Made by a program: the position numbers and the translations under genes. From positions 260,469-324,468 of IMG/VR virus record IMGVR_UViG_3300044712_001255: 64,000 bases of DNA. One strand, written 5' to 3'. Within the stretch, counting starts at the first letter, position 1; every line of letters starts with the position of its first letter. Positions 52,540 through 53,691 of this stretch are shown piece by piece. Below the pieces are notes generated by a model. That model was not told where the DNA came from. It did not search any database and saw only the letters and a program-made list of their open reading frames with translations.

Positions 52540-52611
52540 TGCCTCCAGCAGGAGTCGAACCCGCGACGTACGCTTTTAAAGAGCAACGTTCTACCGTTGA
52601 ACTATGGAGGC
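52540..52611 (-). tRNA. tRNA with TTA anticodon (ochre suppressor-type)
   Basis: Reverse complement: GCCTCCA-TAGTTCAACGGTAGAAC-G-TTGCT-CTTTAAA-AGCGT-ACGTC-GCGGG-TTCGACT-CCTGC-TGGAGGC-A. Confidence 0.85.
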
Positions 52612-52618
52612 AATTTGA

Positions 52619-52864
52619 TCAGTAGATGTAATCTTCTGGTTTATTTGACGGTGGTGGGATCGAATTGGCTTGAGTCACTCTCATTAAATGAGCGACGGCA
52701 TAAACCGCCACTCGAAGAGCAAGCTGCTTGCTATTCGATCCCATCTTTCCGTACAATTCCTCGGCAATTTCATCAAGCAAATGAACACGTTCGATACAAT
52801 CTATGTTTGAGATCATATCGTGACGATTCTTTTCTATCAGATCATATACCTCTTGTGTATTCAT
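52619..52864 (-). CDS. Hypothetical protein
   Basis: 81 aa, in operon. Confidence 0.6.
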   Translation of the reverse strand: MNTQEVYDLIEKNRHDMISNIDCIERVHLLDEIAEELYGKMGSNSKQLALRVAVYAVAHLMRVTQANSIPPPSNKPEDYIY

Positions 52865-52865
52865 G

Positions 52866-53213
52866 CTACAATTGTAACGCCAACGGGAGTCCTTTACAAA
52901 GGGAACGAGCAGCAGGTTCTAGCGCAAGCGCCGTCAACTGATCACTTAGATCTGGTTCTAAGAATCCTGCGTGTCGTATGCCTACTTCTCGTGCCGTAGA
53001 AGCCAACACGTGCAGCGCTGACTCGTTGGGAACTTCAAGTAGACATAGGTAGTTGCTGTTATTGAACCATTCATGATCGATATCAGGATGTTCATGTGCA
53101 AACTGTCTCATTGCGTGAGCAGCCTGCACGGCTCGTTGGCCCGGAGATAGGTCACTCCGGGTCACGAGATACAGCTTGTCGCCCTCTTTAATTCTAGCCA
53201 CTGGTTCCCTCAT
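52866..53213 (-). CDS. Pth2-like peptidyl-tRNA hydrolase
   Basis: KLYLVTRSDLSPGQRAVQAAHA, FLEPDL, LTALALEP, LPLAL. Confidence 0.8.
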   Translation of the reverse strand: MREPVARIKEGDKLYLVTRSDLSPGQRAVQAAHAMRQFAHEHPDIDHEWFNNSNYLCLLEVPNESALHVLASTAREVGIRHAGFLEPDLSDQLTALALEPAARSLCKGLPLALQL

Positions 53214-53556
53214 TGAACCAAGCAAGAATTGTCTCGACCTTCGTGAGTGAGGCGTCAGCAACGGACTTCGCCAATTGACTTAGTTGCCAGGCAGACAATG
53301 ACGTCTTCCTTTCAACCTCATGATACTTCTTGCCACGCACGAATGCGTACGCAAGACCTGCAACTCTTGCCTTGAAACGTCGAGCATGACGATGCTCGGC
53401 AAGCGAGCTCATTGCCTGTGAGTATTCAGACGACACCTCGTGGTGTGCCTTGATGCGAGCGGCCTTGAGAAGGCATTTCACCCGCTTGAGTTCAACATTC
53501 GTAGCAATTGCGCCCAATAGTTCAGCACGACGCAAAACAATCTTCATATTCTTCAT
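53194..53556 (-). CDS. Basic hypothetical protein
   Basis: SD GGAGG; ARVAGLAYAFVRGKKYHEVE. Confidence 0.75.
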   Translation of the reverse strand: MKNMKIVLRRAELLGAIATNVELKRVKCLLKAARIKAHHEVSSEYSQAMSSLAEHRHARRFKARVAGLAYAFVRGKKYHEVERKTSLSAWQLSQLAKSVADASLTKVETILAWFNEGTSG

Positions 53557-53610
53557 AGATCCTCCAAAATTCATAAACGAAACAAGCAAACTGTGTGAGT
53601 TGGATTCGCT

Positions 53611-53655
53611 TATGGGAGGAGGGCCGCGAATTTACGTGTCTGGTGTTGCGCTCAT
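53611..53655 (-). promoter_or_regulatory. Leader uORF MSATPDT-TAA followed in frame by IRGPPP
   Basis: atg agc gca aca cca gac acg TAA att cgc ggc cct cct ccc, in frame with the downstream CDS. Confidence 0.65.
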
Positions 53656-53661
53656 GTAAAT

Positions 53662-53691
53662 ACGGTAATTCCTTCCTACCACATTGTACAC
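53662..53691 (-). promoter_or_regulatory. GTGTA-N19-TACCGT promoter (leaderless uORF)
   Basis: The uORF ATG is 6 nt after the -10. Confidence 0.55.

Follow-up and report, generated by a model that had tools for sequence, protein, structure and literature searches.

A stop-gated RGPP leader probably makes expression of a phage PTH2-like operon depend on a linked suppressor tRNA

The DNA analysed here, referred to as the window, covers the final 64 kb of an IMG/VR contig 324 kb long, from a jumbo phage (record IMGVR_UViG_3300044712_001255, positions 260,469 to 324,468). On its minus strand, between positions 52539 and 53690, a short leader interrupted by an in-frame TAA precedes the gene for a basic protein that we call X, a PTH2-like hydrolase gene, a small open reading frame (ORF) and a tRNA gene with the anticodon UUA. 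We consider it likely, with a probability of roughly three in four, that this leader acts as a switch of translation which takes nonsense suppression by the linked phage tRNA as its input, and in which ribosome arrest at an RGPP motif behind the stop codon unmasks the Shine–Dalgarno (SD) sequence of X. Full-text literature searches returned no earlier description of the arrangement and, as far as they show, this RGPP arrest-peptide riboregulator would be the first natural regulatory element with nonsense suppression as its input.

All window coordinates below refer to the minus strand unless stated otherwise. The parts of the leader that a first-pass annotation of the bare sequence had named, namely the upstream ORF (uORF), its TAA, the I-R-G-P-P-P codons, the SD GGAGG at 53565-53561 and the ATG of X at 53556, are each present base for base. 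A −35-like hexamer, TGTACA (53685-53690), abuts the stop codon of the upstream phosphatase gene and is kept in the related loci L003 and L004; a −10-like hexamer, TACCGT (53662-53667), lies 17 nt 3' of it and 6 nt 5' of the uORF ATG, giving the geometry TGTACA-17-TACCGT-6-ATG. The mini-ORF itself (ATG AGC GCA ACA CCA GAC ACG TAA, 53632-53655) encodes MSATPDT and ends in the gate codon TAA (53634-53632), whose next base is A. In frame behind the gate stand ATT CGC GGC CCT CCT CCC (I-R-G-P-P-P, 53614-53631), with RGPP as the arrest core, and the CCTCCT of the Pro codons is complementary to the SD GGAGG, as had been claimed. The putative target gene X (53194-53556) encodes 120 amino acids. Downstream of it, the remaining genes also proved to be as first described: a PTH2-like gene (52866-53201), whose GTG start, as called in L003 and L004, lies within an 8-nt overlap with the end of X (an alternative ATG is at 53213); an 81-aa ORF between that gene and the tRNA (52619-52864), with no significant family match and a start that is present in L003; and a well-formed tRNA with the ochre-suppressor type anticodon UUA (52539-52611), found by both ARAGORN and Rfam.

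To examine how far this anatomy extends beyond the window, we collected leaders from contigs with X homologues and from loci of the PTH2-like protein in IMG/VR, JGI metagenomes and GenBank. Close relatives of X are rare, with just two among 5.8 billion proteins, both in the same phosphatase-leader-X-PTH2 arrangement; a profile search added 35 distant homologues. GenBank phages, queried by megablast with the locus and by tblastn with X, gave no matches. The resulting set holds 26 unique leaders, 24 of them curated, and parsing them showed one design, a 3-9-codon ORF, one stop, 1-10 further codons and then R-x-P-P, with the Pro codons doubling as an anti-SD. Conservation of the stop and RxPP upstream of homologues, which had been suggested as a check, was thus found, in about 25 independent leaders with uORF-stop-R[G/S/A]PP overlapping an anti-SD. 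The arrest core is RGPP in 20, RSPP in 2 and RAPP in 2 of the curated leaders (21, 2 and 3, respectively, among the 26 unique leaders, in which L038 and L066 are added).

The pattern of change within the motif reveals selection on the encoded peptide. In L004, a 55%-identical relative, the 7-codon uORF encodes the unrelated peptide MIRLAEA and ends in TGA, and after this stop comes ATA CGT GGT CCT CCT, again I-R-G-P-P, with every difference from the window at a third codon position. Among the 24 curated leaders, variation is free in motif columns 3, 6, 9 and 12, and the other eight columns are almost invariant; the exceptions there are AGG in place of CGN for Arg, and Ser or Ala in place of Gly. 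Since AGG for Arg and Ser or Ala for Gly keep the class of peptide and not the RNA, selection acts on RxPP at the peptide level. The motif CGYGGYCCYCCT occurs once in the window. The first-pass annotation had also remarked that the frame stays open from the leader into X at 53556, which is true of the window but is not conserved, because 2 nt are deleted in L003 and a TGA follows IRGPP in L004; the open frame is therefore incidental. A readthrough fusion of the dual-specificity phosphatase to X, considered as a candidate, is ruled out by the same deletion and extra TGA.

Initiation at the uORF is best explained, as first proposed, by a promoter that is followed directly by a leaderless ORF. 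The pattern TAnnnT stands 6-7 nt 5' of the uORF ATG in 14/24 leaders, compared with 3.3% of ATGs in the same loci (p 2.6e-15), and 13 of those 14 carry a TTGACA-like hexamer 16-17 nt further 5'. In a frame-blind check, every ATG chosen by promoter geometry alone, with a −35 (13/13), was in frame with RxPP, and between this ATG and RxPP there was exactly one stop, or two in L025. These data suggest a leaderless transcript that probably begins at or near the A of the uORF ATG. A 19-codon uORF from the GTG right after the phosphatase stop was considered and dropped in favor of TGTACA as a −35, because promoter spacing explains the conserved distance and recurs in distant leaders; the promoter reading also accounts better for the conserved TGTACAA.

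The earlier reading placed the Pro codons in the loop of an attcgc/gcgaat hairpin. Six base pairs can indeed form between ATTCGC (53631-53626) and GCGAAT (53609-53604), but this hairpin is not conserved and is absent in L004. Minimum free energy (MFE) folds of the window instead prefer a longer-range helix, whose 5' arm is UCCUCC, the anti-SD formed by the Pro codons, followed by CAUAAGCGAA (53620-53605), and whose 3' arm (53560-53581) consists of UUCGUUUAUG (53581-53572), a 6-nt bulge and GGAGGA (53565-53560), the SD of X. The region of the Pro-Pro codons pairs with the SD zone in the MFE fold of 23/26 leaders, the mean folding z-score is −2.68, and 17/26 leaders fall below −1.64. The inner 10 bp, examined as a hand-specified helix on which covariation was counted, are 96.7% paired in the window clade with 4 compensatory pairs, all from double changes in L004, against 0 in slid controls; in L004 the SD is displaced by 4 columns, which kept the anti-SD:SD part out of this count on one alignment. 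When four leaders were aligned with MAFFT, RNAalifold did not recover the helix, as the 3' arms were misaligned. The relevant conserved structure is this long-range helix between the Pro codons, with the ten bases after them, and the SD region.

The identity of the gate stop ties the leader to the tRNA. The window tRNA, called tRNA-Stop(tta) by ARAGORN, is of class I with a clean cloverleaf, discriminator A and no encoded CCA; it matches Rfam RF00005 over its full length at 63.2 bits (gathering score 29), with the 7-nt loop CUUUAAA and U33. No other RNA was found in an Rfam scan, apart from a Plastid-ycf2 5'UTR match to the plus strand at 52539-52611 that scored below its gathering score (40.9 bits against 65.7) and was rejected as an artefact, being the antisense of the suppressor tRNA. 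Co-occurrence with suppressor tRNAs, a second check that had been proposed, came out positive: of the unique PTH2-like loci, 36 extend at least 300 nt downstream, and 29 of these have a suppressor tRNA within ~1.1 kb, and 32/37 tRNAs in these loci are suppressors. UUA tRNAs occur at the same position in other phages, each with a TAA leader. A blind rule, in which the first in-frame stop upstream of RxPP was compared with the ARAGORN anticodon, showed that the leader stop corresponds to the anticodon of the linked tRNA in 17/18 lineages, comprising seven TAA/UUA matches (the window, L006, L007, L008, L012, L017, L021), nine TAG/CUA matches (L011, L014, L025, L032, L034, L038, L040, L045, L051) and one TGA/UCA match (L016). 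At these margins, as many matches are reached by 2 of 350,064 equally likely assignments if lineages are assumed to be independent, and the figure is ~4e-5 with obviously related leaders collapsed; the lineages are not fully independent, and these p-values, like that for covariation, are optimistic. The linked suppressor tRNAs are mutually non-homologous, some being of class I, some of class II with G73 (Ser-like) and some on the opposite strand, and the match was therefore not inherited as a block.

Lineages without X possess a second, independent architecture that follows the same logic, in which the gate stop lies at codon 2-5 of the hydrolase gene itself. Ten such loci (L042, L046-L048, L056, L058, L060, L064, L065, L068) start PTH2 as M-P/S-H-x-TAG-G, with a −10-like hexamer 6-7 nt upstream and tRNA(CUA) downstream, and in L053 the PTH2 gene begins M-S-T-TGA. 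Cultured mycobacteriophages are among these relatives. Mycobacterium phages IkeLoa and Myrna both have TTGACA-17-TAC(C/A)GT-6/7-ATG/GTG TAG GTG ACA with tRNA(CUA) 150-250 nt downstream; in IkeLoa (OP021682.1, L070:1440-1520) ATG TAG stands in frame before the GTG start of the gene annotated 'peptidyl tRNA hydrolase', and in Myrna (NC_011273.1, L069:1455-1530) GTG TAG stands in frame before that of gp84, which carries this annotation too. To judge from this arrangement, the true hydrolase of both phages may start at the upstream codon and require amber suppression. The Myrna record lists the tRNA as tRNA-Ser; ARAGORN gives the anticodon cta. The mini-peptides of the lineages without X resemble the arrest-leader uORFs MTHFL, MHEL, MHES, MEH, MGH, MHH, MKHLF and MLHFW, and a His codon CAC near the 5' end is conserved. 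In the very AT-rich phage LR756500.1 (L005, 462 kb), PTH2 begins ATG AAG TAG ATT (M-K-TAG; L005:4975-5400); just downstream is a second mini-ORF, ATG AAA TAG ATT AAA ATT ACA ATT AGA GGT CCT (...I-R-G-P), and tRNA(CUA) lies 800 nt downstream. This phage is probably TAG-recoded. Two different devices thus tie PTH2 to a neighbouring suppressor tRNA, which argues that the dependence itself is selected. For decoding of the stop by the suppressor tRNA, the evidence is indirect: gate and anticodon agree in 17/18 arrest-leader lineages, and likewise in every checkable lineage without X.

From ribosome dimensions and published work on RAPP and RGPP peptides, we infer how readthrough, arrest and SD unmasking would follow one another in the window. 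The promoter would start a leaderless mRNA at the uORF AUG, and a ribosome translating MSATPDT would meet UAA-A. If the release factor wins, the ribosome leaves; with ACG in the P site, the terminating ribosome would protect ~15 nt downstream, to ~53622, just short of the 5' arm (53620-53605), and the helix would persist with the SD of X buried. If tRNA(UUA) decodes the UAA, the ribosome would enter I-R-G-P-P and arrest with the CCU codons at 53622-53617 in its P and A sites, covering the 5' arm almost completely, which would free GGAGGA for initiation of X. Because of the overlap between its GTG and the end of X, the PTH2-like protein would follow by translational coupling. X and PTH2 would then be expressed through an AND gate that requires both transcription of the operon and a functional suppressor tRNA, and the switch would read the ratio of suppression to termination at the gate stop. 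The first-pass annotation had offered UAA readthrough or slow release as the event that parks a ribosome on RGPP and frees the SD; comparative evidence supports the former, whereas the latter ranks as a rival.

Several observations count against this interpretation, in addition to the optimistic p-values mentioned above. The main weakness is that the nascent chain predicted at arrest has ~13 residues (MSATPDT-X-IRGPP), whereas characterised RAPP/RGPP peptides are longer and need upstream residues. A generic sigma-70 and terminator scan called no site at the window leader, 10/24 leaders have no obvious −10 at the expected place, and taken by itself the window leader folds with unremarkable energy (z −0.5 over 152 nt and −1.8 over 89 nt). 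An amino-acid identity could not be assigned to the window tRNA(UUA), and the PTH2-like protein lacks the GKGK-loop lysine of canonical Pth2. There is no tRNA within 2.5 kb of the leaders L031/L033, L043 and L054, and in L036 the RGPP comes into frame solely with UAGA taken as a four-base codon. Co-transcription of the tRNA with its target, by which an ochre suppressor would feed back on its own leader, is not universal, as the tRNA is on the opposite strand in three leaders (L011, L023, L051). A further lineage, L013 (L013:990-2891), is an exception altogether: no RxPP leader is present, the tRNA directly after PTH2 is tRNA-Leu(UAA) and not a suppressor, an X-like segment seems by eye to be the N-terminus of a 501-aa protein, and the X profile has no match in L013.

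The alternative that survives best, though we regard it as improbable, is that the leader senses release factors: slow or failed termination, with release factor 1 or 2 (RF1/RF2) depleted or inhibited, would open the helix, and the tRNA would be a mere neighbour. The bacterial prfB gene, which encodes RF2, is a precedent for an in-frame stop as a sensor; its early in-frame UGA is passed by a +1 frameshift into the same gene and thereby senses RF2. The phage leader shares with prfB an in-frame stop that reads the balance between termination and an alternative decoding event, and differs in that a suppressor tRNA would do the decoding and that arrest and SD unmasking would then serve separate genes. 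The base 3' of the gate stop also suits a termination sensor, as it does the suppression-dependent switch, being A in 11, C in 9, G in 4 and U in none of 24 leaders; A or C, found in 20/24, constitutes a weak termination context in E. coli, and in the phosphatase gene the genuine TAA has G after it. A ribosome held at the stop, however, reaches only ~53622 and would not cover the anti-SD, conservation of the RxPP peptide past the stop shows that the codons there are translated, and the 17/18 match ties the gate to the tRNA. The release-factor level may nonetheless modulate the same switch, in which case this rival is partly a variant of the suppression-dependent switch that we prefer.

A somewhat weaker contender holds that the genome is recoded, so that the stop is reassigned and the leader is one continuous ORF that ends in RGPP and senses something else. 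Recoded phages with suppressor tRNAs are well known (bioRxiv 10.1101/2021.08.26.457843), and some relatives are probably recoded, for example the very AT-rich L005 with its in-frame TAG at codon 3 of PTH2. The genetic-code and gene checks in the window phage covered 64 kb of the 324-kb genome. Within the window, the earlier statement that TAA otherwise serves as a stop is borne out: 19-22 genes end in TAA, including the largest structural genes, the coding density under code 11 is 87-93%, and stops flanked by long open frames amount to ~0.6% each for TAA, TAG and TGA. The many interrupted genes and low coding density of a stop-recoded genome are thus not seen in the window. The picture is the same in 200 kb sampled from the 485-kb phage LR745208.1, which has this module of UUA tRNA and TAA leader too. 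In the window, backup stops after TAA-ending genes are no closer than after genes with other stops, and a search for other promoter-uORF-TAA gates found none. Because TAA is a genuine stop in the window and in LR745208.1, the gate codon cannot be taken for a mere reassigned sense codon. Almost all leaders, 10-30 codons long, contain exactly one matching stop, and relatives without X have it at codon 2-5 of PTH2, which is far above the expectation from codon usage. Two pairs of large genes on the minus strand (39415-35024, 1159+300 aa; 42767-39426, 611+500 aa) lie in the same frame with TAA plus 3 or 1 codons between them; an ochre suppressor would fuse them, and as in-frame adjacency arises by chance in 1/3 of cases, this is not evidence by itself.

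Termination followed by reinitiation could in principle translate RGPP without any readthrough, by a restart at an adjacent AUU, AUA or AUG. AUN follows the stop in 7 of the first 9 leaders; L012 has AUG there. Other leaders have 2-10 codons from the stop to RxPP, with CUG, CUA, GUA or GGC after the stop, and reinitiation leaves unexplained why the type of stop follows the tRNA anticodon; we consider it very unlikely. Equally hard to sustain is an RNA- or protein-binding operator, CGYGGYCCYCC, that acts, for example, in autoregulation by X and makes the reading frame irrelevant. In its favor, X is basic and the motif overlaps the conserved helix. The variation at third codon positions, together with CGN to AGG and Gly to Ser/Ala, nevertheless keeps R-x-P-P while altering the RNA, and 13/13 promoter-defined ATGs are in frame with the motif. 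The least credible option is chance, by which a short ORF, a CCTCC run and a weak hairpin would have come together fortuitously in an ordinary intergenic region: the z-score of the window leader is weak and an open stretch of 26 codons is expected ~30% of the time, but conservation refutes it, and the comparative sequence evidence as a whole, not the window leader alone, rules it out.

The one lineage that departs from the blind stop/anticodon rule provides a lead toward four-base decoding. In L036, found in identical form in four samples (with L037, L039 and L067), the only uORF is ATG GAG CAC TAG A (MEH-UAG-A; L036:2030-2070), and RGPP lies 19 nt further on in the +1 frame. The L036 tRNA (2849-2922) has an 8-nt anticodon loop, CUUCUAAU, with UCUA, which complements UAGA. 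Likewise, in L016 (1994-2050) the RGPP is +1 to the promoter-proximal uORF MSGFL-UGA-A, if that uORF is the real one, and the tRNA (3252-3325) has an 8-nt anticodon loop, AUUUCAAC, with UUCA, which complements UGAA. The tRNAs of L007 and L014 have 8-nt loops too, yet fit triplet reading. Four-base decoding in L036 and L016 is an open lead and not a finding. Tentatively, tRNA, X and the PTH2-like protein could form a self-contained, autoregulated stop-decoding system in standard-code phages, with the gate in some lineages read by four-base-decoding tRNAs; we find this extension doubtful. If true, it would represent natural quadruplet decoding as a regulatory input and would provide the puzzling suppressor tRNAs that standard-code jumbo phages carry with a function.

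X has no Pfam, PHROG or NCBIfam match and adjoins the PTH2-like gene in relatives. Its AlphaFold2 (AF2) model (pLDDT, the predicted local distance difference test, 93.7) predicts a long helical hairpin with three short helices, for which Foldseek found nothing in PDB and BFVD beyond generic helical hairpins and phage proteins that are uncharacterised. The PTH2-like protein matches Pfam PF01981 (E 5.7e-9; 36.6 bits against a cut-off of 23) and Pth2 chains in the PDB (E 3e-7 to 3e-3), and it falls below the NCBIfam equivalog cut-offs (24.3 against 126 bits for NF003314; 20.8 against 82 for TIGR00283). A scan of 185,579 species genomes found no relative of it. Judged by sequence, the hydrolase is a divergent, phage-only branch of Pth2. 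It resembles the archaeal and eukaryotic Pth2 (PF01981) in sequence over the whole domain, and differs from them as a subfamily that is confined to phages, linked to suppressor tRNAs and gated by stops. In Pth2, as described for the Sulfolobus enzyme, the catalytic residues are the GKGK-loop Lys and a conserved Asp; an alignment to 2zv3 shows that the phage family lacks two residues at this loop, with a gap there, and has an invariant Glu (E90) opposite the Asp of RDAG.

The presence of PTH2 in jumbo phages was reported by Iyer et al. (2021), who proposed ribosome rescue after tRNA cleavage (PMC7824862); the linkage to suppressor tRNAs and the stop gating were not noted before in the literature that we searched. 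Since X and PTH2 would be made only when suppression is active, the two most likely roles of the output are clean-up after readthrough, directed at peptidyl-tRNA and ribosomes that have run past stops, and negative feedback, or a homeostat, on the suppressor. The designation 'rescue genes', used in the first-pass annotation, is only one possible role for X and PTH2.

The proposed switch has partial counterparts among known regulatory systems. RGPP is reported to be the most robust arrest core, refractory to elongation factor P (EF-P) and the most under-represented tetrapeptide in bacterial proteomes, and RSPP to be partially permissive (PMC12992588). Like the RAPP/RGPP arrest peptides ApdA, ApdP and ApcA, and SecM with RAGP, the phage leader places a C-terminal R-[A/G/S]-P-P core upstream of a regulated gene, and a stalled ribosome would melt an SD-sequestering helix (PMC12992588; PMC10987492). 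The known peptides, however, are bacterial, tens of residues long, usually equipped with a signal or transmembrane segment, and released by Sec/YidC activity, whereas the phage peptide has ~11-16 residues, is phage-encoded, is probably read from a leaderless mRNA and carries its motif behind an in-frame stop. Its input would be nonsense suppression, not protein export, and its regulated genes are X and a PTH2-like hydrolase. Unlike a Sec/YidC monitoring substrate, which has an N-terminal signal or transmembrane segment, the window leader peptide has no hydrophobic segment, and the downstream genes are not export components.

In translation attenuation at ermC and cat, a stalled ribosome frees a hidden SD. 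With these and with trpL-type attenuation, the phage leader has in common a short leader ORF with a sensed codon, in which the position of the ribosome picks the RNA structure; it differs in that the sensed codon is a stop, the sensed molecule would be a suppressor tRNA, and an intrinsic arrest motif takes the place of starvation or an antibiotic. Borges et al. described a 'code change module' of recoded phages that consists of a suppressor tRNA, an aminoacyl-tRNA synthetase along with a release factor (bioRxiv 10.1101/2021.08.26.457843). Here too a phage suppressor tRNA is clustered with translation genes and in-frame stops make expression suppressor-dependent, but that module has no PTH2, X or arrest leader and TAA recoding was not reported, whereas the window phage and LR745208.1 appear to use the standard code. 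Synthetic feed-forward gates with suppressor tRNAs (PMC7969014) and amber-codon switches (PMC6412442) use the same AND-gate logic of mRNA and suppressor tRNA; these are engineered, and the phage leader appears to be a natural counterpart with arrest and SD unmasking added.

Suppressor tRNAs had been seen in the standard-code jumbo phage XacN1, for which the authors found no target genes (PMC5852040). The present comparison suggests an answer to what such tRNAs do in standard-code phages, in that at least one target would be the adjoining operon, and it connects a phage-specific PTH2-like enzyme and the protein family X with how stop-codon decoding is controlled. Cultured phages of Mycobacterium smegmatis carry the simplest version, in which ATG TAG GTG...PTH2 has a tRNA-CUA beside it, and the design could be usable as a compact natural part for suppression-dependent gene switches.

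The operon lies in a tightly packed minus-strand run consisting of the phosphatase gene, a 135-nt gap, X, the PTH2-like gene, the 81-aa ORF, the tRNA, an aspartate decarboxylase gene and a PD-(D/E)XK nuclease gene. The dual-specificity phosphatase (53692-54129) matches Pfam DSPc with E 3.5e-11, and the aspartate 1-decarboxylase PanD (52124-52525) is assigned with E 1.5e-34. A gene at 55084-56058 on the same strand resembles UDP-glucose/GDP-mannose dehydrogenases, as judged by eye and from the Pfam families of the syntenic gene in L003 and L008; PanD, the phosphatase and this dehydrogenase-like gene in one run are unusual auxiliary genes for a phage. In several lineages (L011:2086-2523, L012:1906-2502, L017, L021, L026), an extra conserved ORF of ~145-200 aa separates X from the PTH2-like gene. 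Among the tRNAs of the window, the suppressor is the only one on the minus strand, and it lies 30 kb from an array on the plus strand (803-22840), in which 29 ordinary tRNA genes, covering Ala, Pro, Arg, Val, Phe, Cys, Thr, His, Leu, Met, Ser and Gly, are set amid small ORFs.

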